Assembly (NCBI GenBank): GCA_016748015.1
Contig: JAAOMT010000470.1
Location: 153,690-217,689, forward strand
Direction: 5' to 3'
DNA: 64,000 nucleotides
Origin: Geosiphon pyriformis uo1
Lineage: Eukaryota; Fungi; Glomeromycota
Position 1 is the stretch's first letter; the number at the start of each line of letters is the position of its first letter. Both the position numbers and the translations under genes were made by a program. This document shows, piece after piece, positions 3,840 to 38,249 of this stretch. The notes beneath the pieces were generated by a model, which did no database searches, was not told the DNA's origin, and saw only the letters and a program-made list of their open reading frames with translations.

Positions 3840-3841
3840 TT

Positions 3842-8264: not shown

Positions 8265-8789
8265 AGAATAGATGTATCATTTAATATGGCAGAGGAAAAA
8301 ATTGTTGGCCAAGGAGAAATTATCTCAACTGGTCAAGCTATTTCCATTTCACCATATAACCAGTACATACTAGCAATAAAAAGAAAGGAAAAAAACCAAG
8401 CACAAATTTTTGAAGCAGAAGCCAGTCTTTGTAAATTAGGAGAAGTTGGACTCATCAATCTCCACATACCAGCCAAAGATTACAGCTACATCAAAATTCC
8501 TATCTACAACAATACAGGAAATGTCATAGAAATACCAGCCGGAACTATTATTAGATACTTAAACACTGAAATAGAAGATCAACCACTAAACCCCATTCCA
8601 GACTTTCTACAACTTTGTGGATATGTTGATATCATATCACAAACAATATATGGACAAAGTGAATATTATTTGCTTCAACCAGAACAACTGGAACAAATGA
8701 ACATGGGAAACTTAGATCCACTCCAACATATGCAACTCAAGATGTTGCTCAACCAGTTCAATAACATTTTTGCCAGCAAAAATAAGTTT

Positions 8790-10365: not shown

Positions 10366-10378
10366 TTATTCCCTCCTT

Positions 10379-11008
10379 TTAATATTGAGCTCTATTAAAA
10401 TTCAACTCATTTAATTCTCCCTCTTGAAGTATTTCTTGGATTTCATTTTCGAGAATTATTTGTGTTATTTGGGCCTGTAATTTTTCAAATTAAGCATTGG
10501 TGATCTTTCCCAATTGATTACTGGTAACCATATCCATTGCTTTGTTGAGCAAAATTTCTGGTTTATCCTGAAATGTTGTGTGTATTCAGTATATGGCTTG
10601 GGCCTGTGTGGCTAAGTTGTTCTTTCCCACAAAATGTTCTAATTGTTGTAGTATTTTTTTGTTGAATAATTGCTTTGTTTTATCTGTATATAGATTCTGG
10701 ATATTTATGTATTGCCCCAAGTAAAAGTAACAATAACTTTTTGGAAATTGTTGTATCCACCAATTCCAAGTTTCTTTAGTCAGCTTTTGATATAATGTCT
10801 CTTTTGTTGACTCTTTTATTGCTAATTTTACTTTCGCAATGATTTTGTCCACAGTATTTTCAGTTTTCTTCTTTGTTCTGAGTTGTAATGTCTTTCTAGT
10901 ATCTTGATATCAAATGGTTTGTTGATTAATTGTAATCTCCATTTCCTGGTGTTGGATTAATTAAAAAAGTTGTTGTGTTAGTAAGTGAATGTTGTCTGTA
11001 ATTTCCAT
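10379..11008 (-). pseudogene. E3 ORF3 (209 codons, MEITDNIH...)
   Basis: Includes track ORF 10586-10852; same length as E2 and E7 ORF3. Confidence 0.85.
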
Positions 11009-11061
11009 TTTTTGATATTTTCTGTCACGTCAACTGTGTTTTTATATATTTTTTTGCTGAA

Positions 11062-12444
11062 TCAATTTAACGTGTTGTTGTTGATAATAATGATTGGTTC
11101 CAGATCTCATGGAATCTCATCTGGTTGGACTAGTATTCTCTGTACTTCTAATAGGGGAATATTACTAGTAGATGGTAGTGTGATGTTGTGATATGGTTTC
11201 AGTCAATCTCCATGTGCTGCTTTGGTTAAAATTTTGTTATCCAATCTTAATTTGTAAGCTCCATTTTCTAGAATTTTTTCTATGTGAAATAGTCTATCTC
11301 ATTTGGGGTCAAATTTTCCACTCTATTGTTTTTTTGCTTTGGTATGATGTAGTAATACTTTGTCTCCAATCTTGAATTCAATTGGTTTGTCTGGTAGTTG
11401 ACTATTGTGTTTTTCTTTTTGTTTTTCTTGTAACTTTTGAATATTATCAGCTGCTTTTTTTTGTTTGTTTTTCAATGTTTCCATTAAGTCATATGTTCTT
11501 TTCAGCAATGTTTCTTGAAAATTTTCTTTTGTTATTGGTTCAGCTGGATATGTATTAATTTTTCTCTCTACTGGTAACGTTGCTGTTCTTTCATATACTA
11601 ATTCAAATGATGTTGCTTGTGTAGTATTTTGTTTTATTGTTCAATAAGCAAATAGTACTGATGGTATGAACAAATCTCAATCGTTCTGGTTTTCTTGGCT
11701 GAGCTTAGCTATTGCTTCACACAATGTTCTGTTGAATCTTTCTAATAATTCATTGGTTTGTGGATGGTATGATAATAATAATGGTCTCTTGATTCCGAAT
11801 TTTTGGCTCAATTTTGTTAATGTTCTGTTCACAAAATGAGTTCTTTGGTCTGATAATAATTCTTTTGGACATCCATGTTGACAAATCAAATCCTGATGAA
11901 TGAATTCGGCAACGGATTTTGCATCTGCTCTTTGAATTGCTTTCATCTCTGGCCATTTAGTAAGATAGTCCATAGCTACTGCTATGTATCTGTTTCCTCT
12001 GTTGGTGATTGTTAATAGTCTGACTAAATTAATTCCAATATGGTCAAATGGTTGTCCTACTTTGATTGGTCTTAACAGTTTACTGGGTTTCTTACCTCCT
12101 TTTCACTGACAGGCATCACAATTTTGAACATATTGGATAATGTCTGGATACATTGATGGCCAATAGTATCTTTTTCTGGTTCTTTCTATGGTTGCTTCTT
12201 TATAAAAATGTCCTGCTGTTGGATTTGAGTGCATGTTGAATAATATGGTTTCTTTTTCTGGCTCTGTAATTACTCTGGTTGGTTGATCTGGATCTTTTCT
12301 ATTTTTCTGATAAAGTATATTTTGGTGAGTGATAAAATATTTTGATTGTTGTTTGATACTCTTTCATTCCATTTGAGATAAATTCTCCTTGAACTGTTGA
12401 GTGTTTATACAATGTTTAAGTTGTTGATATTTTTGTATGTTCAT
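11062..12444 (-). pseudogene. E3 integrase (separate ORF)
   Basis: MNIQKYQQL start; DYLTKWPE, LLSDQ, PQTNELLERFNRTL; 1383 nt, as in E2 and E7. Confidence 0.93.
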
Positions 12445-12507
12445 CTTTTTGTTATATTTTTCGTTGGTATTGTTCTGGTTTTGTTATATTTTTGTGTTAA
12501 AATGTTC

Positions 12508-15500
12508 TTAGATTTGTCTCATTCATGACAAACCATTAGCATTTCCATTGTTTTTTCTTTTTTTGTAATGTATAGTATAATTGTATAGTACAAGTGCCAT
12601 TTTCTATCTTAACTGTCTTCCATCTTCAAATTCTTGTTTTTGGAGTGATATTAATCCCTTGTTATCTGTGTATACTTCAAACTTCTGGCTCAAGTATTTT
12701 TTCCATTTTATGACTGCCCAGTATATTGCTAAGTGTTCTTGTTCTGGTATTCCATAGTTCTTTTTGGCTGGTGTTAAACCTTTGCTGGTATATGCTACTG
12801 AATGTTCTCTGCCATCTAGTCCTTTCTGAAATAATACTGCTCCCAATGCTTGGCTGAATGCATTGGTGGTAATGATGAATGGTTTGCTGTGATTTGGATA
12901 AATCAGTACTGGAGCTTGAATGAGCTTTTTTTTCAAAATATCAAAAGCTTCTTGTTGATTTTCTGCCCATTCATATTTGGTATTCTTGGTTTGCAGTTGG
13001 TTGAGTGGCTGCACTATCTTGGAAAAGTTCTTGATAAAACGTCGATAGTAGCTGGTGAATCCCAAGAATGATTTCAGTTCTGTTATATTGGTGGGCACTG
13101 GAAAGTTTTTTACTATCTCTATTTTCTCTGGATCTGTTTTGATGCCGTCTTTGCTGACTATGTGTCCTAAGAATTTTAGTTCTGTCTTGCCAAAGAAGCA
13201 CTTTGTTGCATTTAACTTTAGTCCTGCTTTTTTTAGTCTTTCGAACACTTGTTGAAGATAATAAAGATGATCATCAAATGTTTTTGAGAATATGTTAGTG
13301 TCATCTAAGTATACAACTACTAATTTTCACAATAAGCCAATATAGACAATTTCTATTAACTATTGGAAAGTGGCTGGTGCATTGGTTAAACCAAATGGCA
13401 TTACTTCAAATTCAAAATTCCCTTCTCTCATGGTAAATGCCGTCTTCTCTTTGTCAGCTGGATCCATGGCCACTTGCCAGTAACTACTATCCAAGTCTAA
13501 TGTTGAGAACTATTTGTTCCCACCAAAAGCATCGAATAGTTCTTATATCTATGGAGTTGGATAATTGTCTCTATGGGTTACACTATTTAGTTTTCTGTAG
13601 TCCACACAAAATCGGATCTTTCCATTCTTCTTTCAGACAAGTACTACTGGTGACAACTATGGGCTCATTGATGGCTGAATTAACCCATTGTCAAGCATCC
13701 TGTTGATCTCTTAACGGATAATTTCATGGCTGGCTGGTGGTACTCTGTATGCTCGCTGTTTAATGGGCATTGCATTTTTAGTATTAATCTGATGCTGGGT
13801 GATGTCAGTTCAGCCAAACTCATTTTCGCTGGCAAAGATGTTATTGAACTGGTTGAGCAACATCTTGAGTTGCATATATTGGAGTGGATCTAAGTTTCCC
13901 ATGTTCATTTGTTCCAATTGTTCTGGTTGGAGCAAATAATATTCACTTCGTCTATATATTGTTTGTGATGTGATATTGACATATTCACAAAGTTGTGGAA
14001 AGTTTGGAATGGGGTTTGGTGGTTGACTCTCCATTTCAGTGTTTAAGTATCTAATAATGGTTCCGGCTGGTATTTTTATGATATTTCCTGTATTGTTGTA
14101 GATGGGAATTTTGATATGGCTGTAATCTTTGGCTGGTATGTGGAGATTAATGAGTCCAATTTTTCCTGATTCACAAAGACTGGCTTCTGCTTCAAAAATT
14201 TGTGCTTGGTCTTTTTCCTTTCTTTTTATTGCTAGCATATACTGGTTATATGGTAAAATGAAAATAGCTTAACCAGTTGAGATAATTTCTTCTTGGCCAA
14301 CAATTTTTTCCTTTGCCATATTAACTGGTATATCTATTCTATCTGTTGATCCAAATCCCTGTATTCCTCTCGCTGTTATTCCTAATTTCTTCCTCTTTCT
14401 CACTGATACTAACTGAGCTACTCTAACCAGAGGCAGGAATATTACCTGTGCTATCTTTTTGTTGGGCTCTATTATATAGGCCTTTTCTGAGTCATTTTGT
14501 AGCATAGCAATAATATTTCTTACATATTCTGTGTCAATTATTCTTTTTCTTATATTAATCCCTCTTTTTGCTAAACTACTCCTAAATGCTAATTGAACCA
14601 TTGTTGTTGCTGGAATTTCTAGTGCTACTTTCAGATCAATACAAGTGTGTGAATGTGGTTCCAATTTGATGGTCCTTTTTTTTCTGGATACCTCAGATCA
14701 AACCCTGCATCAGTATCATGCACATGTTCTGGCATAATACCTTCTCCATTGTTACTATACCATTTCAACTCTTGTTTCTTGGAGAGATCTGGTAGTGCAA
14801 TGTATTGTTCATAGTTTAAATTGGAGTTTAAATCTGAGTTTGAATCATCTTTGTTGTCATTGCTATTTTGAATGAAACTTGAACCATTGTTGTCATCGTT
14901 ATTGTCAGAGTTTGAATCGCGATTGATTAGCAATTCTAATTCTAATGCACAGCTGCTGATTGGTTCTTCTTTTTCAGGGATCATGTAGATTATACATGGT
15001 AGTGGATTGTAAATGAGATCACAATTGTCACAATATTCAAAGTCACTGGGAATTAAACAATGGCGACACAGTTTTGTATTTAACTGTACTAGCCATTGTT
15101 CTTGCTCTTCTCTAGTGGGTGCCTAGTTTTGATAGTGTTCATGGAACTCTTCTGGTTCCAGAAAATTTATGACTGGCTCTGCGTACCAGTTAAGCTCAAT
15201 GGATTCTGGTGGGTTGTTTTTAATTGTTCTGATTTCTTTTGGTGATGCACCTTCAATTTTGGTGGTTGCCATCTGCCATAATTCATCATTGTCATGTGAA
15301 CAACTGTCCAATTGCTGTACAGCTCTTCTCCAGGTGGCTTCTATGGGTGTTCCTTTCTCGACCCAGTTGCTGATAAGGATTGTGTATTGACAGAACACAT
15401 TGCATGTTTCTTCTCTTTCCAGAATGTCATTTCACATTCCTTCATCTAGCAAAGTCTCCTCACAAATGAGACAAGGTTGGCTATCCCATTTTCCTTGCCT

Positions 15501-18500
15501 CTTTGGTCATCCAAAGCATTCGAGTAAGCATGAATGACAGTAGAACTTTGTTGTGGTGTGGTATTCATTATTGTTGCTACAGCATGCACCCATTGACAAC
15601 AGTTTTTTGTTGCAATCAATGCACACAAGCCTTGGCCATTAATAATTAGATTGTTGTGGAGTGTGGTGGGTGTAGGAATTATAAATGATGGTGGTTGGTA
15701 GTGTTCTTTCTTTCTTTTCTTTTTTTTTTCCCTTATCTTCATTCCATTCCCAATTGGAAGCTTCTTCTTGTTTGTTGTCAGTCCAAGTCAGATCATCAGT
15801 TTCCCAGGTAAGTTCATTTCTCTGCTTTCCTTTCCCGTTGTTGTCCCAAGAGAGTATTGGTGGCAGCTCGTTGTGTTCTTCATCAGCCCATGACACTTGG
15901 TAGGCTTCCCAGGTAGGTTTTGGTTTTTTTTCTTCAAAGTCAATTAGTGGTGCCATGGTGTTGGTAATTTTGAAGTGGCCACATGTTGCTAGTACACGTG
16001 TGTGTCACCCATTCTGGCTGAGTTGGAGCTCTTGTGTATTCCAGTCCAGAGTGGCATTCGTCTTGGACAGCCAGTCATTACCAACTAGAGCTTGGTATTG
16101 AGTGGCTTTCATAATGAGTACTTTGATTGGTACTATGATGCCATTAATTTTGATTGGTAAGTCATCAATTTCGCTGATTGGAGTCTTGGTTGCTCTATCA
16201 GCCGTAATGATTCTAGTGCTAGCAGCTCAATCAACTCGGCAACCTAATTGATTCATGAGTTGTTGTGTGATGATGCTGCCTACTGAACCACTGTTAAGAA
16301 TTAGTTTGATGTGATGGCCATTAATTTTCACATCAGTATACATGGCAGTAATTGGTTTTTCTTCTAGTACAGCTCCACTAAATAATGACATGTTTGATGG
16401 TTCCTCGAGTTCGAATGGAAAAATGGCGTCCAGTGATTTGTTGTTGGTGACTGTTGCAGATGGAATATTGCTGGTACATGTTTGTTGTTTTTGGGTGGGT
16501 TTTTGGTTGCTGGGTGAGGCATCTTCTGGGGTAACCAGAAGACTTAAATAGTTCTGGGAATTTGGGTTTTAGGGATTTCCGGCACCTGAATTCTATTAAC
16601 AAGATCCTGTTTAACTGAAAAGGCTGGAGATCGGCTGATGAACTACCATCGACAATCTCCAGTTTTGCTGTGTGATTCTCGGCCTTTGGACTCTACTGAC
16701 CAGTAAGTTTTGTGGTAGGATCTAAATTGTTTGGGGTTGATAGATTGTTGGCAGTTATGGTTGATACATTATCTGTGGCTATTGCTGATAAATTGGGGTC
16801 ATTGGTTGATAAATTGGCGCTTGATATACTGGTAGTTAATAAATTAATTGCTGTGTCATTGGCAGATAAGTAGTTTGATATTGTGTTGAGTTTGATTGAT
16901 GATTTGGAGTTGAGAACTGGCAATTGGGGTTTTTGATATTGATTTCCCAATCATTGGTTATTTAAACACTAGTGGCAGTCGATTTAAATATGTCCTTGTT
17001 TACCACAATAGTGGCAGATATGTGTTTCCTGTTGCCACTGTTGATTGGTTGATGAAGATAGACATGGTTGATTTTGGCCACAAGTAGAGTTTCCTTGATT
17101 GTTGCGTCGTTGTGGAGGCTGATAAATAGCATAATTGTCAGTTAAGTATCTTTCCAATCTCTTATTGATTGATTCACTGAACTTTTCCAATTTGGAATCC
17201 AATTCAGATGATCCATTCATTACTAGATTAACGGCTTGAGCGTGATTAGCCTCTGACTCAGCAGATTCAAAATCTCTGGCATGTGTGACTGCATCTTGAA
17301 GAGTGCCTGGATGCAACAGACGTACATGTTGTAAGATGCTGCTGCGCAGACCATGGATAAACTGATTGAGTATCTGTGGTGCTGTGAAATAGTTGGTGTC
17401 AATTGCTTGAATTTGGTGTAGGTTTTAATAGAAGCGTCCCAAGTAAGTGGTAACTGCTTCAGTTTCTCCTTGTTTCATGGTGGTGAATGCATTGACTAGG
17501 GGATTGATGCTGTTATTGTTGCTGAAGTATCTTAGGAATTCCACTTTAAAGGCATTAAAATCTTGTGGTTTATTAATCAAACTCTGATACCATGAATCAG
17601 CAGTATCTTTGAGAAAGTAGGGAATGGCTTGTATTGCTCAAGCATCATTCCATCCATTGGCTGCGATGGCTTTTTCTACATCATTCAGCCATATTTGAGT
17701 GTCATCTTCTTAGCCCATAAAGTTGTCAAGTTTTGCGATTGGTGCGTAGGCCATTAGATCTAAGTTAGGTGGTTGTGGTGGCTATTGAAGCAGTTGTTGT
17801 TGTCCTGGCTGTTGGGGTGATAGCTGAAGTGGCTGCTGTATGGGTTCAGCTATGAGATTAATCGGCAGTTGATCAATGACGATTACCAAAAGTAAGTTTT
17901 GCTGATTATTTAATTCAGGATTTGAATTGTTCTGCCTTTGATGATTTGGAGTTTTGATTTCCGAAATTTCTAGATTTAGATTTTGCTAAGCTTGAAAATT
18001 TGGGGTTTCAACTTCTGGGTTTTCAGTGATCAGGTTTTGGTAAGTAAATTCTTGATCTTCCAATTCTTCTTCCTCTTCTTCTTTAGATAGTTCCCACGGG
18101 GTAGTGGTTTCAAAGTCTGGTTGAGGCAGCAGTAATTGAATTCTTGATGGAGTTGGTAATTGTGATTTAAATCCTTCAAAATATGCTCCATATGGTCTTA
18201 GTAAGTCTTCTTTCTATTGTTTGTTTTGGAACTGAAATCTTCCAATGTTGATGTCACATTTGAAGTGGACACGTCTACTGATAAGATATTGATGGCACTT
18301 CCAGATGTGTAGTGATATGATAGAGCAGTTGGTAATTCTACTCTGTGTTTCTTTTAACTAGATAACTATATTCCTTTTGGTATTGCTGCTGGTGTTTGTA
18401 TTCTTCCTTTATCTTTGTCTGCGTAGGTAATGGAAAATTGTTGTTGAGTGTACTTTTCAATAGTTTGGTTGATTTTCCTGATTATTGGTGCAAAACTATA

Positions 18501-18774
18501 GTTCCTTGGTAAGTTGGTGTGTTGAAATAATTCTGTGTAAAAGTTTTCTCTTGCTGCTTTAATGTTAACTGTTCCTCCTAAGCATTTAGTGATTTTGTGA
18601 TTGACATAAAAGTTGAAAGCTGATTCGGCTGGGTAATGATTACTGTTTAATCCTAATTGTTGGCTGTATTGTTAAAACAAGGATTTCGCAAATCCTAAAT
18701 GGTTTGCTTCTATATTTTCTGATTCTGCCACTTTTGGTTTGGTGTTGTTGATGCTGGTTTTCCATAGGATTATA
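12508..18774 (-). pseudogene. E3 ORF1 polyprotein (gag-PR-Cys-rich-dUTPase-RT-RNase H)
   Basis: Track ORFs 16984-17316 (gag CCHC), 15123-15956 (Cys-rich region), 14269-14984 (dUTPase, GIQGFGST), 12604-13248 (RT/RNase H). Confidence 0.93.
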
Positions 18775-18793
18775 CCTCACAGGGAGCACCAAA

Positions 18794-19626
18794 TGTTACA
18801 GGTAATTATTTCTGCTGTTGAATTAAATAACAACCTGTAACTTGGTGCTCAAAAGCTACTTCCATTGATGATGTTCTGCAAGTGTTGTATCTGAAGGTTT
18901 TGATGGAATTCTTTGTATAATGAACAGAGATTCAATAGTGTCGATAGTAAATGTATCTTTCCAAGAGTTTTCCCAATTTCTTTTTCAGCATGGTGGCCAG
19001 ATTTAGTCTGGCAGTCATGCCCTTCTGATAAGCTATCCAATAATATATAAAATTCCACCCTTATTTCTGGATCTTTTACCAGGCTATCCTTGACGTCAAT
19101 AACTCAGTGCTTTATTTCTTAATCAATTAGTATACAACAACAAAATCAAAGAAAGAAAGAAAATAAAATAAAGAAACTAAAATAAGAAAATAGAGAAAAT
19201 AAGCCAAGGCAATTTGGTACGTTAGTATCTCATCAATAGCTGTTCTCAAAAGCTATTGTTCCAGCATGGTTAAGTATCAATTACTATCAATATGAAGTGT
19301 TGATAGTGGAGAGTGGTTTTGAAATATGAAATATTTATTTATTTGATGATTTGTGTTTCTGGGCTAAGGATTCTGTCATATCAATTCTGTCTTTTCTGTT
19401 TCTAACACTACTGCTATATATACATAATTGAGATTCCTTAATTCCTCAATTTTTCATGACATGAATCCTGGAATTCCTGGAATCCTGTAATTTCTCATTA
19501 GAGAATCCTGAAATTCCTGGAATTCTGCAATTCCTGAGAGGAATTCTGGAATTCCACATTTACTATGCCTACTTCTGATTGGCTAATAATTATGCTAATA
19601 TATTTCCTATATTTCTATGAGTAATA
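18794..19626 (-). repeat. E3 5' LTR
   Basis: Followed on the minus strand by TT and the PBS at 18775-18791. Confidence 0.95.
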
Positions 19627-19630
19627 CCAA

Positions 19631-20210
19631 TATGACAGAACTGAAATCATTCTTGAAATTCGCTAGCTACTATCAACGTTTTATCAAAAACTTTTCCAAG
19701 ATAGTGCAACCACTTAACTAACTGCAAACCAAGAATACCAAATATGAATAGGCAGAAAATCAACAAGAAGCTTTTGACATTTTGAAAAGAAAGCTTATTT
19801 AAACTCCAGTACTAATTTATCCAGATCACAGCAAACCATTCATCATCATCACCAATGCATCTGGCCAAACATTGAGAGCAGTATTATTTCAGAGAGAACC
19901 AGATGGCAGAGAACATCCAATAGCATATGCTAGCAAAGGTTTAACACCAGCCAAAAAGAACTATAGAACACCGGAACAAGAACACTTAGCAATATACTGG
20001 ACAGTCATGAAATGGAAAGAATACTTGAGCCAGAAGTTTGAAGTATACACAGATCACAAAGGATTAACATCACTTCAAAAACAAGAATTTGGAGATGGAA
20101 GACAGTTAAGATAGAAAATGGCACTTGTACTATACAATTATACTATACATTACAAAAAAAGAAAAAACAACAGAAATGCTAATGGTTTGTCATGAATAAG
20201 ACAAATCTAA
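19631..20210 (+). pseudogene. pol: E2 RT thumb/RNase H (resumes after E3)
   Basis: ELKSFL, TNASG..LRAVL, HPIAYASK, EQEHLAI, VYTDHKGL; ends QI-TAA at 20208-20210. Confidence 0.92.
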
Positions 20211-20273
20211 GAACATTTTAACACAAAAATATAACAAAACCAGAACAATACCAACAAAAAAATACAACAAAAG

Positions 20274-21656
20274 ATGAACATACAAAAATACCAACAATTG
20301 CAACATTATATAAACACTCAACAGTTCAAGGAGAATTTATCTCAAACGGAACGAAAAAGTATCAAACAACAATTAAAATATTTTATCACTCACCAAAATA
20401 TACTTTATTAAAAAAATAGAAGGGATCCAGATCAACCAACCAGAGTAATTACAGAGCTAGAAAAAGAGACTATATTATTTAACATGCACTCAAATCTAAC
20501 AGCAGGACATTTTTACAAAGAAGCAACCATAGAAAGAACCAAAAAGAGATACTATTAGCCATCAATATACCCAGACATCATTCAATATGTTCAAAATTGT
20601 GATGCTTGTCAGCAAAGAGGAGGAACAAAACCCAGTGAACCGTTAAAACCAATCAAAGTAGGACAACCATTCGACCATATTGGAATTGATTTAGTCGGAC
20701 CATTAACAATTACCAACAGAAGAAACAGATACATAGCAGTAGCTATAGACTATCTCACTAAATGGCCAGAGGCAAAAGCAATTCAAAGAGCGGATGCAGA
20801 ATCCGTTGCCGAATTCATTCATCAGAATTTGATTTGTCAACATAGATGTCCAAAAGAATTATTATCAGACCAAAGAACTCATTTTGTGAACAGAACATTA
20901 ACAGAATTGAGCCAAAGATTCAGAATTAAGAGACCATTATCATTACCATACCATCCACAAACCAACGGATTAGTAGAAAGATTCAACAGAACATTGTGTG
21001 AAGCAATAGCTAAGCTCAGCCAAGAAAACCAGAATGATTGGAATTTGTTCATACCATCAGTACTATTTGCTTATTGGACAATAAAACAAGATACTACACA
21101 AGCAACACCATTTGAATTAGTGTATGAAAGAACAGCAATGTTACCAGTAGAGAGAAAAATTAATACATATCTAGCTGAACCAATAACAGAAGAAAATTTT
21201 CAAGAAACATTGCTGAAAAGAACATATGACTTAATGGAAACATTGAAAAACAAACAAAGAAGAGCAGCTGATAATATTCAAAAGTCACAAGAAAAACAGA
21301 AAAAAAGACACAATAGTCAACTACCAGACAAACCAGTTGAATTCAAAATTAGAGACAAAGTATTACTACATTGTACCAATGTGGAAAAACAATGGAGTAG
21401 AAAATTTGACCCCAAATGGGATGGACCATTTCACATAGAAGAAATTCTAGGAAATGGAGCTTACAAATTAAGATTGGATAACAAAATTTTAACCAAAGCA
21501 GCACATAGAGATTGACTGAAACTATATCGCAACATCACACTACCATCTACCAGTAATATTCCACAATTAGGAGTACAGAAAATACTAGTCCAACCAGATG
21601 AGATTCCATGAGATCTGGAACCAATCATTATTATTAACAATAACACATTAAATTAA
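20274..21656 (+). pseudogene. E2 integrase, stand-alone ORF (460 codons; HHCC, DDE, GPF; no chromodomain)
   Basis: ATG 20274; H...GHF...CDAC; GIDLVGPL; LLSDQ; QTNGLVERFNRTL; WDGPF. Confidence 0.95.
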
Positions 21657-21669
21657 TCTATTAAAAGAA

Positions 21670-21678
21670 TATATAAAG
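21670..21678 (+). promoter_or_regulatory. Candidate internal TATA box upstream of ORF3
   Basis: TATATAAAG between the integrase stop and the ORF3 ATG; TATA-like motif at the same place in all seven copies. Confidence 0.45.
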
Positions 21679-21710
21679 ACATGGTAGATGCAACAGGAAA
21701 TATCAGAAAA

Positions 21711-22340
21711 ATGGAAATTACAGACAACATTCACTCACTAGCACAACAACTCTTTCAATTAATCCAATACCAGAAAATGGAGATTACAATCAATCAACAA
21801 ACTATTCGATATCAAGATACTAGAAAGACATTGCAACTCAGAACATAAAAGAAAACTGAAAATACTGTGGACAAAATCATTGCAAAAGTAAAATTAGCAA
21901 TAAAAGAGTCAACAAAAGAGTCACTATATCAAGAGTTGACTAAAGAAACTTGGAATTGGTGGATACAACAATTTCCACGAAACTATTGTTATTTTTACTT
22001 GGGACAACATATAAATATCCAGAATCTATATACGGATAAAACAAAGTGATTATTCGACAAAAGAATACTACAACAATTAGAACATTTTGTGGGAAAGAAC
22101 AACTTATCCACACAGGCCCGAGCCATATACCAAATACACACAACATTTCAGGATAAACCAGAAATATTGCTCAACAAAGCAATAGATATGGTTACCAGTA
22201 ATCAATTGGGAAAGATCACTAATGCTCAATTTGAAAAATTACAGACCCAAATAACACAAGTAATTCTCGAAAATAAAATCTAAGAAATACTTCAAGAGGG
22301 GGAATTAAATGAGTTGGATTTCAATAGAGCTCAATATTAA
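21711..22340 (+). pseudogene. E2 ORF3: 209-aa accessory protein of unknown function in the env position
   Basis: One frame from MEITDNIH to RAQY-TAA with three premature stops; track ORFs 21867-22049 and 22089-22283. Confidence 0.88.
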
Positions 22341-22353
22341 AAGGAGGGAATAA
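22339..22353 (+). promoter_or_regulatory. Polypurine tract AAAAGGAGGGAATAA
   Basis: Directly precedes the 3' LTR TG. Confidence 0.92.
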
Positions 22354-23226
22354 TGTTACTCATAGAAATATAGGAAATATATTAGCATAATTATTAGCCA
22401 ATCAGAAGTAGGCATAGTAAATGTGAAATTCCAGGATTCCTCTCAGAAATTTCAGGATTCCAAGAATTTCAGAATTCCCTAACAAAGAATTGCAGGATTC
22501 CAGAATTCCAGGATTTCTTTTATAGAAATTGCAAGATTTCATGAATTCCAGGATTCCTGTCGTGAAGAATTAAGGAATTAAGGAATCTCAATTATGTATA
22601 TATAGCAGTAGTATTAGAAACAGAAAAGACAGAATCAATATAACAGAACTCTTAGTCTAAAAACACAATCATCAAATAAATAATTATTCTATATCACAAC
22701 CCACTCTCCACTATCAACACTTCATGTTAATAGTAATTGATACTTAATCATGCTAGAACAATAGCTCTTGATCATGGCTATTGACAGGATATTAACATAC
22801 CAAATTGTCTTGATTTATTGTCTCTATTTCTCTTTATTTTCTTTTCTTTATTTTATTTTCTTTCTTTTTTTGATTTTGTTGTTGTATACTAATTGATTAA
22901 AAAATTAAGCACTGAGTTATTGGCATCAAAAATAGTCTGATAAAAGACCCAGAAATAAGGGTAGAATTTTATATATTATTGGATAGCTTACCAGAAGAGC
23001 ACGACTGCCAGACTAAATTCAGCCACCATGCTGAGAAAGAAATTGGGAAAACTCTTGAGAAAAATACATCTACTATTGACACTATTGAATCTTTGTTTGT
23101 TATACAAAGAACTCCATTAAAACCTTCAGATACAACACTTGCAGAACATTATCAATGGAAATAGCTTTGAGCACCAAGTTATGGGTTTGTTATTTAATTC
23201 AACAGCAAAAATAATCATCTGTAACA
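22354..23226 (+). repeat. E2 3' LTR
   Basis: 873-bp direct repeat of 2967-3839. Confidence 0.97.
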
Positions 23227-28799: not shown

Positions 28800-29710
28800 T
28801 ATTACAGGTGATTATTTGGAGTCTGAAACAAATAACAAACTCATAACTTGATGCTTAATAACTAATGTGAGTTGATAATTTCTAAAGATTTTCATATCTG
28901 AAGATTTTCATACTTAAAAGTTTTGGTAAAGTTTTTTGTATAATAGACAGAAATTTAATAGTGGTTTTTAGTAGTCTTCTGAAATCGCAATTTTGTCAAT
29001 TTTTTTCTCAGCTTGATGGCCAGCAATTCTTTGGTAAGTAATTTTTAAATTTAAGTATTTATCCTCTCACAGAAGTTTTTTATTAGACAATCTTTAATAT
29101 CAATAACTCAGTGTTTAATTTTTAATCAATTAGTATACAACAAACAAAAAATAAAGAAAAAAATAAAATCAAAACATAAAAAAATTTGGCCAAGGTAATT
29201 TAAAAATTAGTATTCTGTCAATAGCTATGATCAAGTACTATTGATTTAGTATAGTTAAGTATTAATATTTATCAACATGAGTTGTTAATAAGGAAAAAAT
29301 AAATTGTAATGGTAACAAGTATTTTATTGATATTTGATATATCTACTTCAAATCATAGAATACTATTGTATAATAGAATGGATAGGAAGTTAGAATGGAA
29401 GATTTTTAAAAAAACTAAGAATCTTTCTTTCTGTTTCTAATATTACTACTATATATACATAAATTTTATTATATAAGATTCCTTGAATTTTTTAATTTTC
29501 TAGCCAGGAATCCTGGAATTCTTGAAATCTTGTAATTCCTTGAAAAAAATCCTGGAATTCTGGAATCTTGCAATTTTTTATACTGGAATCCTGTAATTGC
29601 AAGAATCTTGCAATTTCTCTGAGAAAAATCTTGAAATTCTACTTTTATTGTGTCTTATTTTGATTGACTACTTTGTACTAATATATAATTTTTATATTCT
29701 ATAAGTAACA
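28800..29710 (-). repeat. E1 5' LTR
   Basis: TATTACAGG...AGTAACA; PBS adjacent at 28781-28797; outer flank ATAC. Confidence 0.92.
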
Positions 29711-30260
29711 ATACACAACAAAAAACTTTTGAAGAATCTTTGATTTTTTCTTTGCATTTTTGGCATTCTAATACTAATTTTTTTGATGGCCATTTTCCTC
29801 ATTCTATTAATACTTGTTTAATTTTTTTAGGCAATTTTCAAAGTTTTTTATCTAAATATGTTTTTGGAAAGATTATTGATTATAATTGATTATCTAATCC
29901 AAAAGAAATATCTTGCATTAATGATTGCTTTCTACTTGGACTTAAATTTATCTTGCTTGCAATTAAAGCATTTTTACTAAATGTTACATGATTAGAACTA
30001 TTATTAAAAACAAATATAGCTGTACAATCTGGATATAATTTCTCAAAAATTAGAATTGCTTTATATTTAATTTGTTTAAAAAGATGGTTTGCTGTTTAAT
30101 AATTATCTTGATTTATATTAGATTGTAAATAGTATTGTATTTTTTTTGGTATATTAGAATAGTTTTTTATATTATTTTGTTGTAAATATAAACATTTATC
30201 AATTTTAGTTAGAAATTTACTGACCATAATTGATTTTCTATTTTCTTTTTTTCTTAGTGG
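29711..30260 (-). pseudogene. Tc1/mariner-superfamily DDE transposase fragment (oldest substrate of the nest)
   Basis: Minus-strand translation PLRKKENRKSIMVSKFL...NY*TANHLFKQIKYKAILIFEKLYPDCTAIFVFNNSSNH...KQVLIE*GKWP...CC resembles fungal Sagan/Ant1-like transposases (FDNSSNH motif); subfamily unverified. Confidence 0.75.
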
Positions 30261-30468
30261 TGTTACAAGTGATTATTTGGGGTCTTAAATTAAATAACAA
30301 ATCTGTAACTTGGTGCTAATAGCTAATACAATTATTATAATCTGAAGATTTTGGTTGTCTGAAAATTTTGGTTAAGTTTTTTGTATAATAGACAGAGATT
30401 CAATAGTTGTTTTTAGTAGCCTTCTGAAATCGCAATTTTCTCAATTTTTTTCTTAGCTTGGTGGCTGG

Positions 30469-31288
30469 TATTACAGGTAATTATTTGGGGTCTCAAAGCA
30501 AATAACAAATTCATAACTTGGTGCTCAATTGATATACCAATGTTAATTACTGAAGATGGTTTGTATCTGAAGATGTTAGATAAGTTCTTTGTATAATGAA
30601 CAGAGAATTAATAGTTGTTTTCAGTAGCCTCCTGAAATCACAATTCTATCAATTTTTTTTTGGCTTGGTGGTCAGCAATCCTCTGGTAAGTAATTTATAA
30701 TTCTTATACATGTTCTACTCACTTGCAGAGGTCTTTTACCAGGCAATCCTTGATGTCAATAATTCAGCACTTAATCCTTAATCAATTTAGTAAACCACAA
30801 AAAGAGATAATGATAAAACAAAATAAAAAAAAATAAAGAAAATAAAGAAATAAGCCAAGGCAATTTTGTTAAAGTTAGTATTTTGTCAATAGCCATAATC
30901 AAGAGTTATTGTTCTAGTGTGGTTAAGTATGAATTTCTATCAACATGAAGTATTGATAGTGGAAAGTGGATTAAGATAGTGAATAATTATTTATTGATAT
31001 TTGTAATGTAAAAGGTTGCTTAGATCAAATCTAAACTGAGAAGTCTCTAACTAAAGGATTCTGCTCTTTTCTATTTCTATTACTACTGTTATATATACAT
31101 ATTTGAAATTCCTCAATTTCTTAATTTTTCACACCAAGAATCCTTTGCAATTCCTTGTACAAGAATCCTGAAATTTCTGGAATTCTGCAATTCTTCTTGA
31201 GAAAAATCCTGAAATTTTACATTTACTACAATTATTTCTGATTGGTTAATTTATGTGCTAATATACTTCCTATGTTCTATAAGTAACA
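30469..31288 (-). repeat. E5 3' LTR (820 bp; U3 repeat array contracted)
   Basis: Matches 49538-50411 apart from about 54 bp, mostly in the repeat array. Confidence 0.93.
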
Positions 31289-31302
31289 TTATTTTCTCTT
31301 TT

Positions 31303-31941
31303 TTAATATTGAGCTTCATCAAAATCTCCCAAATTTCCTAACTCTAATTCTTTGTCTTTGAGTATTTCTTGAACTTTTTTTTCGAGAATTACTTGAATTA
31401 TTTTGTTTTGTAATTTTTTAAATTGGGTGTTGGTTATTTTTTCCATTTGGTTAACTGTAATAAAGTCCATTTCTGGATTAAGTAAAATTTCCAGTTTGTC
31501 TTAGAATCCAGCATGCAATCTATAGATGGTTCTTGCTTGTGTTGTTAGATTGTTTTTTTCCATAAATTGTTTTAATTGTTGCAGTATTGTTGTGTTGAAT
31601 AATTGTTTTGTTTTATCTGTATATAAGTTCTGAATATTCAAGTGTTATCCCAAGTGGAAATAACAAAAGTTTCTTGGAAATTCGTGTATTCACTATTTCC
31701 ATGTTTCTTTGATCAACTCTTAATATGTGGTAATACTTGTTGGTTCTTCTATTGCTAATTTTATTTTCAGAACCCTTTTGTTGATAGTGTTTTCTGTTTT
31801 TCTTTGACTTTTGTATTTGGGTATCTTTCTGGTATCTTGGTATTGAATGGTTTGTTGGTTGATAGTAATTTCTATATTCTGTTTTTGAATCAGTTGGAAG
31901 ATTTGTTGTATTAGTAAGTGCATGTTGTTAGTGATTTCCAT
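31303..31941 (-). pseudogene. E5 ORF3
   Basis: MEITNNMHLLIQQIFQLIQ (track ORF 31720-31941); NFCYFHLG. Confidence 0.85.
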
Positions 31942-31995
31942 TTTTCTAAAGTCTTCTATTGCATCTACTATGTTTTTATATTCTCTTTTTATTGT

Positions 31996-33379
31996 TCAAT
32001 TTTACGTATTCAGTCCAATGATTATAATTGGTTCCAGATCTTGTGGAATCTCCTCTGATTGAACTAGTATTCTCTATACTCCTAATTGTGGAATATTACT
32101 GATAGATGGTGACACTATATGGTAATATGATTTCAGTTAATTACTATGTGCTGTTTTGGCTAAGATTTTGTTGTTCCATCTTAATTTATAAGCTCTATTT
32201 CCAAGAATTTTTTCTATGTAAAATGGTTTGTCTCATTTGGGGTTAAATTTTCCACTCCATTGTTTTTCTGCTTTAATATGATGTAAAAGTACTTTGTCTC
32301 CAATTATGAATTCAACTGGTTTATTTGGTAGTTGGTTATTGTGTCTTTCTTTTTGTTTTTCTTGTGATTTTTAAATGTTATCAGCTGCTTTTCATCATTT
32401 GTTTTCTAGTGTTTCCATTAAGTCATATGTTTTTCTTAGCAACATTTCTTAAAAATTGTCTTCAATTATTGGTTTTGTTAGATAAGTGCTGACTTTTATT
32501 TTAACTAGTAATATTGCTGTTCTACTATATACTAATTCAAATGATATTGCTTGTGTAGTGTCTTGCTTTATTGTCTAATAAGCAAATAATATTAATGGTA
32601 TAATTAAGTCCCATTCATCCTGGTTTTTTTGGCTGATTTTGGCAATGGCTTTACACAATGTTCTATTAAACCTTTCAACTAACCCATTTGTTTGTGGATG
32701 GTATAGTAATGATAATGGTCTTTTTATTCCAAATCTTTGACTTAATTCTGCCAATATTCTATTCACAAAATGAGTTCTCTAATCTGATAATATTTCTTTT
32801 GGATATTCATGTTAACATATTGAATCTTAATAAATAAATTTACCAATGGATTCTGCATCTACTCTTTGAATGGCTTTTTGCTTCTGGCTATTTTGTAAGA
32901 TAATTCATGACTATTGCAATATATCTGTTGTCTCTGCTAGTGATTGTTAATAGTTTGACTAAGTCAATTCCAATATGGTTAAATGGTTGTCCCACTTTGA
33001 TTGGTCTCAATGGTTCATTGGATTTTGTTCCACCTCTTCTTTGACAAGTATCACAATTTTGAACATATTAAATTATGTTTGGATACATTGATGGCCAATA
33101 GTATCTTTTCTTGGTTTTTTCTATTGTTGCTTCTTTATGGAAATATCTTGCTGTTGGATCTGAGCGCATATTGAACAATATTGTCTCTTTCTCTGGTTCT
33201 GTGATTACTTTGGTTGGTTGATCTGGATTTCTTTTGTTCTTCTAGTAAAGTATATCTTAATGGTTAATAAAATATTTTGATTGTTGTTTTATGTTTCTTT
33301 GTTTTTTTTGAGATAATTTTTTCTTGAACAATTTGGTATTTATATAATGTTGGAGTTGTTGATATTTTTGTATATTCAT
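31996..33379 (-). pseudogene. E5 integrase (separate ORF)
   Basis: ATG at 33379; HPQTNGLVERFNRTL. Confidence 0.9.
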
Positions 33380-33409
33380 CTTTTGTTATATTTTTGGATT
33401 GAAATGTTC

Positions 33410-36400
33410 TTAGATTTGTCTTATTCACAACAATCCATCAGCATTTCCGTTTTCTTTTTTTTTTTTATAATGTACTGTATAATTAAATGATAAAAGTTCT
33501 ATTTTCCATCTAGCATAGTGATTGTCTGCAAATTTTTGTTTTTGAATTGAAATCAATTCTTTATGATCAGTATATACATCAAACTTTTGACTCAAGTATT
33601 TTTTCTATTTGATAACAGCCCAATAGACAGCTAAGTGTTCCAGTGCTAAAATTCTATAGTTTTTTTCAGCTAGACTTAAGCTTCTACTGGTATAAGCTAT
33701 TGGATGTTCTTTTCCATTTGGTTCTTTCTGTGATAGTACTGCTCCCAATGTTTGGCCTAATGTATTGGTAATAATGATGAATAGTTTGTTGTAATCTGAA
33801 TACATCAACACTGGAGCTTAAATAAGTTTTTTTCTCAGTGTGTTAAATGCTTCTTGTTGAGCTTCTGTCTATTTATATTTTACATTCTTAGTTTGTAAAT
33901 AATGGAATGGCTGAGCCAGTTTAGAAAAGTTCTTGATAAAACGGCAATAATATCCAGCAAATCTTAAGAATGCTCTTAGTTCTGTCAAGTTGGTTGGTAC
34001 TGAAAAGTTTTTTACTATTGTGATCTTATCCAGATCCGTTTTGATACTGTTTTTGCTTACAACATGTCCTAAAAACTTGAGTTCTGTTTTTCCAAAGAAA
34101 CATTTGTTTGCATTCAATTTCAGTTCTGCTCTTCTCAATCTTTTGAACACTTGTTGAAAATGATATAGATGGTCATTGAATGTCTTGAAGAACACATTGG
34201 TGTTATCCAAGTATACAACTACTGATTTCTATAGTAGTCTAGTATAGACAATTTCCATAAGTCACTGGAAAGTGGCTGGAGCATTCATCAAGCCAAATGG
34301 CATAACCTCAAATTCGAAATTTTCTTCTTGTGTTGTGAAAGCTGTCTTCTCTTTATCTTCTGATTTCATGGCTACTTGCCAATAACCACTGTCTAAGTTT
34401 AGTGTTAAGAACCATTTCTTTCCTCCAAAAGCATTGAAAAGTTCTTGGATCTTTGGAGTTGGATAGCTATCTCCTTTTGTTATTTCATTTAGTTTTTAGT
34501 AATCCACACAAAAGCAGATTTTTTCATTTTTTTATGGACTAGTACCACTGGTAATGACTATAAACTCATTGATGACTGAATTAGCCTATTGTTAAGCATC
34601 TGATTGATTTCTTGACAAATGATCTCATGGCTAGCTGGTGGTATTCTGTATGCTCTCTGTTTAATTGGCATTGTATTTCCAGTCTTAATTTGATGTTAAA
34701 TGATGTCAGTTCTGCCAAATTTGTTTTCACTGGCAAAGATGTCATTGAAATTGTTAAATAACATTTTGAGCTGCATATGTTGTAGTGAATCTAAGTTTCC
34801 CATGTTCATTTGTTCTAATTGTTCTGATTAGAGCAAATAACATTTATTTCGTCCATATATTGTTTGTGATGTAATATCCACATATTCACAAAGTTGTGAA
34901 AAGTCTGGAATGATGTCTGGCAGTTGGTTTTTAATTTTAGTGGTTAAGTATTCAATGGTTGTTCTTTCTGGTATCCTGATGATATCTCCTGTGTTGTTGT
35001 AGATGGAAATTTTTATGCAACTGTGATTCTTGGCTGGTATGTGTAAATTGACTAATCCAATCTCTCCTAATTCGCAAAGTTTTGCTTCTGCCTCAAAAAT
35101 TTAAACCTGATTCTTTACTTTTCTTTCTATAACTACCATGTACTAGTCATATGGTGAAATAGAAATTAATTGATGGGTGGAGATAATTTTTTCTTTGTTA
35201 ACAATTTTTTTCTCTGCCATATTAATAGATACATCTATTCTATCTGTTGATTTAAATTCCTGTATTCTTCTTGCTGTTATCCCTAGTTCTTCCATATTTC
35301 TTATTAACACTAACTAAGCTATTTTTACCAGAGGTAGGAATATTGCCTGCGCTATCTTTTTATTTGACTCTATAATATGTGCTTTTTCTGAGTCATTTTG
35401 TAGCATAGCAATGATATTTTCTACATATCCTGTGTTAATTATTCCTCTTCTGATGTTAATTCCCTTTTTGGCTAAGCTGCTTCTAGATGCTAACTGAATT
35501 ATTGTTGTTGCTGGAATTTCTAATACTATTTTGAGATCAATGTAGATGCACGAATGGGGTTCCAATTTAATGGGATTTTTTCTTGGATATCTCAGATTAA
35601 ACCCTGTATCAGTATTGTGTGCATGTTTTGACATAATATCTTTATTGTTATCACTGAATCATTTCAGTTTCTGCTCCTTGGTAAGATTAGAGAGTGCAAT
35701 ATATGTTTCTGGGTTTAAATTGGAGTTCGAATTATTGTTATTTTTATTGTCATATTAAGCAGAGCTGAAACTGTTATTTTCATCATTGTCATTATCAGAG
35801 TTTGAATCAGAATTGAAAGTTAATTTTGATTCTGATGCACAGCTGTTGATTGGTTTTTCCTCTTCTGAGATTGTGTAAATCATGCGTGTTGGTAATTGTA
35901 AATGAGATCACACATATTACAATATTGAAAGTTACATAGTATGAAACAGTAGTCACATAGCCTTGTATTTATTTTTTCCAGACATTGTTCTTGTTCTTCT
36001 CTTGTTGGTGCCAAGTTTTAATAGTGCTCATAAAATTTCTCTGGGTCTGCTTTAATATCCAAAAAGATGTCTGAATTGAAGATAAGGACTATGTTGACTG
36101 GTTCTGAAGGGTTGTTCTTTATCTTCAAAATCTCACTGGGTAAAGTGCCTTCTATTTTGGCATTGGCCATCTGCCAGATCTCATCTTCATCATGTGGGTA
36201 GCCATCCAAGTGAGAGATTGCTCAGTGCCAGGCAACAGTAATAGGTGTTCCTTAACTTACTTAGTCACTGATAAGAATTGTATACTGGCATAAAGCATTA
36301 TATGTTCTTTCTCGACCAGGAATGTTGTTCCACATTTTTATGTCGAGTAATCATTCACCACAAGCAAGACATGATTCATTGTCCCACTTTTATTGCTTCT

Positions 36401-38246: not shown

Positions 38247-38249
38247 TTT

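Follow-up and report, generated by a model that had tools for sequence, protein, structure and literature searches.

Retrotransposons of the fungus Geosiphon pyriformis carry an accessory gene, ORF3, next to a tandem array in the U3 region of the 3' LTR, and in sequence comparison the two behave as a single 3' block that can be exchanged among nearly identical gag-pol backbones. The elements are a G. pyriformis-restricted group of dUTPase-containing Ty3/gypsy retrotransposons with two functional parts at their 3' end. ORF3 is a genuine, evolutionarily conserved accessory gene, previously undescribed and kept by purifying selection, and the arrays are constrained cis elements. ORF3 and array co-vary type for type; the chances are about even that this is a side effect of the way the elements replicate, ORF3 being a selected accessory gene and the arrays being enhancer-like.

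Extra ORFs are known in LTR retrotransposons and, to our knowledge, almost none has a function. ORF3 offers a clear-cut example: an orphan under marked purifying selection, with at least five divergent types in one early-diverging symbiotic fungus. Each type adjoins a distinct, partly palindromic promoter array, and the intact copies of three types give a matrix for cognate versus non-cognate tests. The question posed is whether retrotransposons other than retroviruses code for specificity factors of their own, for transcription or against silencing. Should the answer be no, the mosaic pattern still shows recurrent exchange of a 3' block, and the limits of that block, from the IN end to about the U3/R border, agree well with the mechanics of reverse transcription.

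Organization of the elements

The window, the whole 64-kb stretch of DNA analysed, is a nest of LTR elements with seven nested Ty3/gypsy elements. Their LTR pairs are 84-92% identical and end in TGTTAC...TGTAACA, i.e., are of the TG...CA type. Element Eb is flanked by a 4 bp target-site duplication (GTGG). Its 3' LTR (TGTTAC...TGTAACA; 22354-23226, forward strand) shares 89% identity with the 5' LTR of the element (2967-3839) and is immediately preceded by the polypurine tract (PPT) AAAAGGAGGGAATAA (22339-22353, forward strand), which was read from the sequence and is conserved in all elements and types. The carboxyl-terminal part of its integrase (IN; 20829-21656, forward strand) was identified by translation and by Pfam matches to rve_3 and SH3_Tf2-1 on a 228-aa ORF. 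The pol stop is at 21654-21656, preceded by a decay stop at 21513-21515. Upstream gene models of related loci matched PEG10_N-capsid/Ty3_capsid, Asp_protease and dUTPase, in this order, in a scan that left out the RT domain. Paired LTRs, domain order and PPT identify the elements as Ty3/gypsy (Metaviridae).

Two insertions, Eb in Ea and Ec in Eb, are both inverted and lie within the RT-RNase H linker, at loosely similar but non-identical sites. Alignment to the uninterrupted Ed copy places these sites 86 nt apart, which rules out self-targeting of the same nucleotide. Decay after insertion is a general C>T/G>A process that goes beyond CpG, so bases "restored" in decayed copies are weakly constrained.

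ORF3 copies and reading frame

The presence of ORF3 in every element between integrase and PPT, claimed in an earlier note on this DNA, is borne out by a homologue of ~200-220 codons in all seven window elements. ORF3 of Eb (type A; 21681-22283, forward strand) has 200 codons plus the terminal stop, with a 99% self match and homologues across the window; two in-frame stops interrupt it (21846-21848 and 22047-22049). The other type A copies are on the reverse strand: Ec (10436-11038; 87.5% aa identity to Eb over 192 aligned residues) and, from type A sublineages, E7 (59626-60228; 64% aa), Ed (31369-31971; 62% aa) and Ea (421-1023; 58% aa). The E4-type copy of E4 (51113-51730, reverse strand) has 40% aa identity to Eb (tblastn 2e-34). 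The most divergent type is that of E6 (~45401-46100, forward strand), a frameshifted copy matched by the ORF3 profile in its carboxyl-terminal domain (E=7e-14). In-frame stops or frameshifts break all seven window copies. Intact ORF3 is found elsewhere in the genome, with 209, 211 and 221 codons at loci L004, L006 and L001/L005, and natural intact proteins are available for three types: A (KAG9303264.1), E4-type (KAG9285377.1) and C (encoded at L001 and L005). ORF3 was analysed without a consensus or repair of its sequence; stops were written as X in local scripts, and searches took stop-free pieces or natural database proteins.

ORF3 keeps a constant position across five types that are only 25-40% identical. 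It shares the frame of pol in types A, E4 and C, from which one stop and about 8-25 codons separate it; in Eb it follows pol in frame, one stop codon further downstream. This arrangement would fit an ORF3 that is a read-through extension of integrase or a former IN carboxyl-terminal domain, with a role in integration or in the choice of target and no relation to U3, and the two nested inverted insertions in the RT-RNase H linker could be read the same way. However, the frame differs from that of pol in the type D copy examined, a conserved Met (MEIT/MEIP/MILIP) opens ORF3, no read-through context is evident, and the two insertion sites differ, with loose similarity. An integrase extension is therefore hardly to be expected.

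ORF3 is a single orphan family

The ORF3 "types" are, by sequence homology, divergent members of one orphan family. Their dN/dS within types is 0.14-0.34, similar to or below that of IN. Searches gave 39 matches by phmmer, among 1.84e9 representative proteins, and 155 by profile search. G. pyriformis was the source of all 120 profile matches listed, of the 155, and of the 10 of the 39 phmmer matches that were looked up; no relative outside Geosiphon was seen among the matches listed, either in the 1.84e9 representatives or in a 5.8e9-protein collection. All cluster members come from one annotated assembly and none has a transcript source.

Pfam gave no match on ORF3 pieces and no consistent family across 55 ORF3 members, and the ORF3 profile matched no PDB sequence. 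Structure prediction, a route proposed in the earlier note, proved uninformative with natural or stop-free ORF3: AlphaFold2 yielded two poor models (pLDDT 46.7 and 48.1, from 34- and 55-row alignments), and the best Foldseek hit in PDB had E 0.3 with TM below 0.2, a weak comparison given the low confidence of the models. Pfam detected neither a DNA-binding nor an RNA-binding domain, and the fold models are too poor to judge. Homology to Tas or Tax was found neither by Pfam and PDB-sequence searches nor by Foldseek, whose fold comparison is weakened by the low-confidence models. The protein is mostly helical, ~200-220 aa long and mildly basic (pI 8.5-9.3), with a conserved basic patch (+5/+6) at about residues 31-60 and an acidic carboxyl-terminal tail. 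It has no transmembrane segment in the four types analysed, in which the maximum Kyte-Doolittle value over 19 residues is 0.27-1.18.

The U3 arrays

A tandem array lies upstream of the TATA box in each U3 of the seven elements. In the 3' LTR of Eb the type A array (22427-22586, forward strand), defined by TRF and motif counts, is the part of the noncoding 3' region that has diverged least by transversions. It is preceded by a CCAAT box (22398-22402, forward strand), read from the sequence and conserved in types A and E4, and followed by the TATA box TGTATATATAG (22596-22606, forward strand), which is conserved in all types and has the U3/R border just downstream. The array is made of 8/9-nt TTCCAGRA units arranged within about 40-nt higher-order repeats, which generate GGAATTCC and TTCCAGGAA. 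The same methods located the type A array of the Eb 5' LTR (3038-3199, forward strand) and further type A arrays on the reverse strand at 10190-10300, 19443-19555, 29506-29640, 50208-50339 and 59335-59474. Among A sublineages the array differs by 0-2 transversions per ~100-120 nt, versus 5-15 in the flanks. Type-specific motif copies are confined to the LTRs and none is found upstream of ORF3, which rules out an internal promoter of the foamy-virus kind.

The earlier note had described each array as a set of odd-centred palindromes, a description that fits the types unequally. It holds in full for the E4-type array (50871-50975, reverse strand), whose about 40-nt units each carry ATTGCT-N-AGCAAT (max-arm P=0.002); a perfect 19-nt palindrome (9+1+9), CACATTGCT-C-AGCAATGTG, is conserved in several E4-type copies. 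In type A seven of the eight exact GGAATTCC sites of the window are in U3 (about 1.1 expected by chance); the arrays exceed dinucleotide shuffles in palindromy by little (P 0.007-0.5). For E6 TRF recovered the 20-nt units at 37463-37547 and 46283-46359, within arrays that occupy 37463-37590 (forward strand) in the 5' LTR and 46283-46410 in the 3'-LTR copy; the TTCG-C-CGAA palindrome is absent from the sequence as it stands and there is no excess of palindromes or self-folding. The CpG restoration by which the palindrome had been obtained is weakly constrained, given the general C>T/G>A decay, and the palindrome is conjectural. Palindromes are significant in types E4 and D and weakly so in A. 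The shuffle comparison found none in the type C array, which is made of plain direct repeats.

The arrays also fold as RNA better than shuffles in E4 (z=-4.5), D (z=-3.1) and A (z=-2.4). HTLV Rex binds the RxRE in the 3' LTR, and in a similar way ORF3 might bind array hairpins in RNA, U3 being the 3' UTR of genomic RNA, for export, stability or packaging. The basic character of ORF3 and its conserved +5/+6 patch would suit such a role, and a full-length RNA with a 3' ORF may plausibly need post-transcriptional regulation. This is nevertheless quite improbable: palindromic repeats automatically give excess folding, the C and E6 arrays fold no better than shuffles, Pfam found no RNA-binding domain in ORF3, and the arrays lie between CCAAT box and TATA box, an enhancer location.

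Exchange of the 3' block

Addition of ten loci to the window gave 19 ORF3-U3 pairs of five types (A, E4, E6, C and D), in all of which the ORF3 type is concordant with that of U3. The pairing of three ORF3 types with their own arrays put forward in the earlier note thus extends to types C and D, with the types now seen as one homologous family. Free recombination of ORF3 with U3 types, which that note had set as the observation that would speak against it, was not seen (no discordant pair among the 19).

In IN, a transversion distance of 0.02-0.03 separates A from E4-type elements, equal to that found between A sublineages. The distance rises to 0.20-0.22 in ORF3 and to about 0.3 in U3, and the R-U5 of E4-type elements is back to the A level from about 22700 (Eb coordinates). 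Over 4.9 kb of gag-pol, L006b, an element of E4 type, resembles A. The E4 lineage combines family-A gag-pol and R-U5 with a foreign stretch that begins where ORF3 starts and reaches no further than about the U3/R border; these distances agree with the earlier observation that integrase and R-U5 of E4 are ordinary family A while ORF3 and U3 are far more diverged, and the mosaic (IN distances, L006b) with the proposal of a swappable 3' block. In the same pairs dS is 0.9-1.2 in ORF3 versus 0.13-0.57 in IN, and the divergence between Eb and E7 changes at about 21500, which indicates that the 3' block is older than pol and that its exchange is recurrent.

The idea that the E4-type block came from a separate donor family was rejected, since every alignable E4-type pol is A-like (E4 and L003 in the IN segment, L006b over 4.9 kb); the comparison left out L006a, in which an internal RT-to-IN segment is deleted, as well as L008 and L010. 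Either the donor lies outside the sample or the block acquired its divergence where it is.

Proposed linkage through reverse transcription

Physical linkage, named in the earlier note as the main alternative, is the reading preferred here. At its 3' end the genomic RNA carries ORF3, PPT and U3 side by side. A single template switch close to the end of IN followed by minus-strand strong-stop transfer at R would place exactly this block on another gag-pol/R-U5 backbone. The observed boundaries are those of one such switch and first-strand transfer, and linkage alone therefore predicts the co-variation. Separation of ORF3 from the array by crossover is estimated at about 3% (roughly 130-300 nt of usable homology in about 8.4 kb), at which zero discordant pairs are expected. 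The A/E4 complex would be a recombining population whose homogenised pol genes still carry old 3' blocks. The U3 array is a tandem enhancer-like part between CCAAT box and TATA box; it would most simply be read by dimeric transcription factors, by default those of the host, and ORF3 would be an accessory factor for expression or propagation of the element itself. Co-variation is then the null expectation of the adjacency of ORF3 and array, and a partnership of protein and DNA a candidate.

Four counter-points deserve mention. Self-complementarity is significant in three of the five types of array, as it would be in operators of a dedicated dimer. Within the A/E4 complex, a single large jump in ORF3 coincides with a single complete replacement of the array. 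The basic patch and acidic tail of ORF3 would fit an activator, and we know of no host factor for the Geosiphon array motifs. All four are compatible with linkage, which accounts for the pattern but not for the activity of ORF3.

A possible role of ORF3 as regulator of its own array

These features lead to the alternative of a transactivator or anti-silencer: ORF3, probably as a dimer, would bind DNA sequence-specifically at the U3 array of its own type and form with it a co-evolving specificity cassette. We consider it unlikely, though a serious contender. It would explain the concordance of all pairs across five types, the inclusion of both ORF3 and array in the E4-type swap, the conserved operator-like palindromes of E4, D and A arrays, and the constraint on arrays together with purifying selection on ORF3; the basic patch, acidic carboxyl-terminal tail and pI of the protein are in line with it. 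Against it, the searches found neither a domain nor a fold for DNA binding, the two models being too poor to judge; type C arrays have no palindrome and that of E6 is conjectural. A sublineages whose ORF3 diverge by 36-42% aa share one array motif, an internal promoter of the foamy-virus kind is lacking, and linkage predicts the same pattern. A still more specific version, in which ORF3 would be, for fungal LTR retrotransposons, the first described regulator that is both TE-encoded and sequence-specific, a dimer of new fold that activates or de-silences through the palindromic array of its own type, co-diversifies with it and is shuffled as a cassette, in an independently arisen VANC- or Tas-like system, is doubtful and given slightly less credence.

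Comparison with known systems

Complex retroviruses keep their regulators 3' of pol, a location that ORF3 shares and that favours a regulatory role. HTLV-1 Tax acts via three 21-bp repeats (TxRE) in U3, and foamy-virus Tas (Bel1) via sites in the LTR and internal promoter. The likeness to Tax and Tas is one of anatomy alone: an accessory gene 3' of pol that adjoins the 3' LTR, and short U3 repeats upstream of the TATA box. ORF3 differs from them by the lack of sequence or fold similarity, the fungal host, the Ty3/gypsy backbone without env and the absence of an internal array copy upstream of the gene.

A further precedent for the regulator reading is offered by the VANC anti-silencing proteins of Arabidopsis VANDAL (Mutator-like) transposons, which pair with tandem target motifs with a specificity shown experimentally (PMC5735166, PMC10398659). 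Like VANC, ORF3 is a fast-evolving TE accessory family in which divergence of the protein is accompanied by divergence of short tandem motifs in noncoding DNA of the element, a pattern inseparable from linkage here. VANDALs are DNA transposons whereas the ORF3 elements are LTR retrotransposons, and the Pfam comparison found no homology of ORF3 to a curated family. In Geosiphon, moreover, motif and gene are <150 nt apart and would be co-transferred by the mechanics of reverse transcription.

Genes between pol and the 3' LTR, either aORFs or env-like, are found in plant Tat/Athila and bdelloid rotifer elements (PMC5408684). ORF3 resembles them in position, in being lineage-restricted and in its likewise unassigned function. 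Unlike env-like genes it codes for a short, helical, basic protein without transmembrane segment (maximum 1.18) and is seen, among the matches listed, in one glomeromycotinan fungus.

The U3 tandem enhancer repeats of MLV (72/75 bp) are bound by host factors. Like them, the Geosiphon arrays are located upstream of the TATA box, have lineage-specific motifs and vary in copy number, to the point that the two LTRs of one element differ (1.5 versus 3 array units in Ed). Unlike them, they are built of short units (8-40 nt), with long palindromes of up to 9+1+9 nt in three types.

Nested elements of the window

Self-comparison of the window reveals nested LTR retrotransposons with LTRs of ~850–980 bp and interiors of ~8.4 kb. 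Ea (1–2966 and 23228–~29710, minus strand) contains Eb (2967–9516 and 19626–23226, plus strand), which hosts Ec (9517–19624, minus strand). Ed (30469–37267 and 47054–50412, minus strand) is interrupted by E6 (37268–47053, plus strand) and followed by E4 (50412–~58704, minus strand) and E7 (58705 to the window end, minus strand). Matches to dUTPase (PF00692) in the pol region, weak in the window ORF 8100–8795 (plus strand) and clear in gene models of related copies at further G. pyriformis loci (L002 5124–7165, L004 4361–7199, L006 7972–8973, L007 and L009), identify dUTPase-containing Ty3/gypsy elements. Eb (junctions 2966/2967 and 23226/23227) and Ec (~9518/9519 and ~19626/19627) are both inserted, in inverse orientation, in the RT-RNase H linker of the element that hosts them, at sites 86 nt apart and with loosely alike targets (..GCTTAA/CCAC and ..GCTAAC/CYRA). 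This may be a sign of regional targeting preference. Two nested insertions would fall so close with a chance of ~2%.

Comparison of four LTR pairs (2967–3839/22354–23226, 9517–10365/18793–19626, 30469–31286/49538–50411 and 37268–38246/46088–47053) yielded 286 transitions versus 17 transversions, in all dinucleotide contexts, CpG and non-CpG. C>T changes occur in all 3' contexts and the window CpG observed/expected ratio is 0.18. Decay after insertion is a strong C-to-T hypermutation, RIP-like or methylation-driven, that extends beyond CpG alone. A 208-bp tandem duplication of LTR U5-end sequence (30258–30671; 2.0 copies, 80% identical) adjoins the Ed 3' LTR and could be left over from another LTR or have arisen by replication slippage.

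An orphan gene family upstream of the 3' LTR

ORF3 is a real, new orphan family of accessory genes in G. pyriformis; it adjoins U3 arrays under constraint, and the Ty3/gypsy complex that carries both is recombining. The segment 21670–22600 is the 3' end of Eb where, on the plus strand, the integrase tail (matches to rve_3 and SH3_Tf2-1; pol stop at 21654–21656) is followed by ORF3 (21681–22283), the PPT (22339–22353), the 3' LTR start (22354), a CCAAT box (22398–22402), the tandem array (22427–22586) and a TATA box (22596–22606). When Eb ORF3, its stops replaced by X, was used as a tblastn query in a local script, each element yielded a single homologue, seven in all, located in every case shortly before the 3' LTR. 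Identity to Eb is 87.5% in Ec, 64% in E7, 62% in Ed, 58% in Ea and 40% in E4 (E 2e-34). E6 has 25% identity over the C-terminal 99 residues, a domain matched by the family profile at 7e-14, with its N-terminal MTISQNI... segment in a neighbouring frame. The three ORF3 types described in the earlier note are thus present across the seven elements as diverged members of a single family.

Every ORF3 copy of the window has stops or frameshifts. The longest open piece (10589–10909, minus strand) gave 39 phmmer matches in all among 1.84 billion representative proteins, and a profile search of a 5.8-billion-protein collection gave 155. The 120 listed profile matches and the phmmer matches looked up are all named 'hypothetical protein' of Geosiphon pyriformis (GCA_016748015.1), with no relative from beyond this species among them, and a literature search found no paper on ORF3. 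These matches add two types, C, which begins MILIPENINN..., and D, which contains ...YWFYKIGEQLDL.... Intact genes are found for type A (L004:10001–10627, 209 aa), E4-type (L006:10001–10633, 211 aa) and type C (L001 and L005:10001–10663). At L006, an E4-type element (3290–11506) lies within the IN region of a second one of E4-type. Through an internal deletion the inserted element lacks everything from RT (position ~134 in the test query) to the IN end, yet its ORF3 (211 codons) is fully intact and its array has four units.

Nei-Gojobori dN/dS of ORF3 is 0.14–0.29 among copies of type A, with within-type values of 0.31 for E4-type and 0.34 for type C; the neighbouring integrase segment has 0.2–0.55 between sublineages. 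Position, length and a core (W..W..FP.NYCY..LG..LNIQ.LY..., then ...ILLN...T.NQ...TN.QF..LQ) are kept across types at 25–40% identity. Together with the low dN/dS, this identifies ORF3 as a selected protein.

ORF3 and U3 form a mosaic 3' block

Ten genomic loci were fetched around ORF3 homologues. The 19 ORF3-U3 pairs (seven type A, six E4-type, two type C, three type D, one E6) are all concordant in type, as the earlier note had proposed from the window, and free reassortment of ORF3 and U3 types is excluded. Transversion distances bear out its further claim that E4 is a family A element with only ORF3 and U3 replaced. Between A and E4-type they are 0.02–0.03 in integrase, equal to those among A sublineages, 0.20–0.22 in ORF3 and ~0.3 in U3, which is effectively unalignable, returning to the A level in R-U5 from ~22700 (Eb coordinates). 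ORF3 distances are 0.27 for A versus C and 0.30 for A versus D, with IN distances of 0.16 for both. L006b, an E4-type element of full length, has A-like gag-pol along 4.9 kb; the combination with a foreign ORF3-U3 therefore characterizes the whole E4-type lineage, beyond one copy. Eb and E7 are nearly identical in IN (0–2 transversions per 120 nt, dS 0.13) and diverge from ~21500 on (ORF3 dS 1.04). Across all A sublineage pairs dS is 0.9–1.2 in ORF3 versus 0.13–0.57 in IN, so that the 3' block traces back to a much deeper coalescence than pol does. The A/E4 complex is a recombining population in which old 3' blocks are retained.

During retroviral replication the RNA 3' end is the template for U3, which directly follows ORF3 and the PPT, and R-U5 derives from strong-stop DNA made at the RNA 5' end. 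If RNAs A and B are packaged together, strong-stop DNA synthesized on A could transfer to the 3' R of B, and synthesis could switch back to A near the IN end; the provirus would then have gag-pol and R-U5 of A and ORF3-PPT-U3 of B. The boundaries predicted by this argument from established retroviral replication are those observed, and co-variation is therefore no proof of coupling between ORF3 and array. A crossover parting the two would have ~130–300 nt of usable homology out of ~8.4 kb, by estimate roughly 3% of events, which makes zero discordant pairs among 13 A/E4 elements unremarkable. We give an even chance to co-variation being linkage alone, with the arrays read by host factors.

U3 arrays and the putative regulator

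The earlier note had viewed ORF3 as a dimeric DNA-binding transactivator or anti-silencing factor recognizing the U3 array of its own type. By anatomy the nearest analogues of ORF3-U3 are HTLV Tax, which pairs with 21-bp repeats, and foamy-virus Tas. The nearest documented precedent of co-diversifying TE protein and motif pairs is VANC (PMC5735166, PMC10398659).

Type A U3s carry TTCCAGRA 8/9-mers in ~40-nt higher-order units. Both GGAATTCC and TTCCAGGAA arise where 8- and 9-mers follow head to tail. Of the eight sites in the window that match GGAATTCC exactly, U3 accounts for seven, versus ~1.1 expected by chance. E4-type arrays have 2–4 units of ~40 nt. In the less decayed copies (L006, L008, L010) every unit comprises the palindrome CACATTGCT-C-AGCAATGTG, which is perfect, 19 nt long and odd-centred, and then a third half-site. 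The ~20-nt units of type D have a 5+2+5 inverted repeat, ATAAC-(AC/GT)-GTTAT, whose perfect palindrome ATAACATGTTAT arises only via C>T decay, and the four 23-nt direct repeats of type C have no palindrome. TTCG-C-CGAA of E6 is present only after hypothetical back-mutation, and since transitions occur in all contexts, beyond CpG, restoring its bases has many degrees of freedom. Odd-centred palindromes, formerly attributed to every type, hence hold for A and E4, fail for C and D and are conjectural for E6. Against dinucleotide-preserving shuffles the excess of palindromes of any kind has P = 0.002–0.006 in E4-type and 0.01 in type D, is weak in type A (0.007–0.5 by LTR and, in the young L004 copy, 0.014 for the maximum arm) and is not significant in types C and E6. 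RNA-fold z-scores agree by type (-4.5 in E4, -3.1 in D, -2.4 in A, +0.5 in C, -0.8 in E6). An RNA-level role of ORF3 is improbable.

Within type A, no other noncoding 3' stretch has as few transversions as the array (0–2 per ~100–120 nt, versus 7–8 in U3 just upstream and 5–16 in ORF3): the array is under its own constraint. This is consistent with a cognate DNA-binding regulator, as are the E4 and D motifs, which resemble operators for a dedicated dimer, and the coincidence, in the A/E4 complex, of the only large ORF3 jump with the only complete replacement of an array. However, type C lacks a palindrome, one motif is common to A sublineages whose ORF3s differ by 36–42%, a search upstream of ORF3 found no copies of the U3 motifs, and no DNA-binding fold is detectable. 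ORF3 pieces and 55 members scanned singly matched no Pfam family, and no solved relative was found. In two AlphaFold2 models (mean pLDDT 46.7 and 48.1) an N-terminal helix and a beta-hairpin precede a linker and about eight helices; at this low pLDDT, Foldseek against the PDB gave at best E = 0.3 with TM <0.2. ORF3 has no transmembrane segment, a pI of 8.5–9.3 and, in types A, E4 and C, a conserved +5/+6 patch at residues ~31–60 and a net acidic end (last ~30–60 residues). These features are compatible with a putative nucleic-acid-binding regulator, without being evidence for one. A cognate regulator is on balance rather unlikely, and a role linked to integrase is the least probable function.

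Array unit number differs between the two LTRs of Ed (~1.5 versus 3 units; 31100–31190 versus 50208–50339), and the Ec U3s measure 217 and 202 nt (10190–10300 and 19443–19555), so arrays expand or contract by units, either after insertion or in its course.

Borders of ORF3

In types A, E4 and C ORF3 lies in the frame of the pol stop, with one stop codon and a short spacer in between (window 21654–21683 and homologous sites; L001 ~9870–10000); in the type D copy the two are out of frame. Read-through is one possible reason for the shared frame, descent of ORF3 from a C-terminal extension of integrase another. At the other border one nucleotide block, GAGCTCAAT..AAAGGAGGGAATAA, comprises the last codons (..DF[DN][GR]AQY stop) together with the PPT. 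It is found at 22300–22353 and all other ORF3 ends (e.g., 46060–46127, L001 10640–10683) and is kept even between the most distant types. The C-terminus of ORF3 coincides in part with a cis-acting replication signal.
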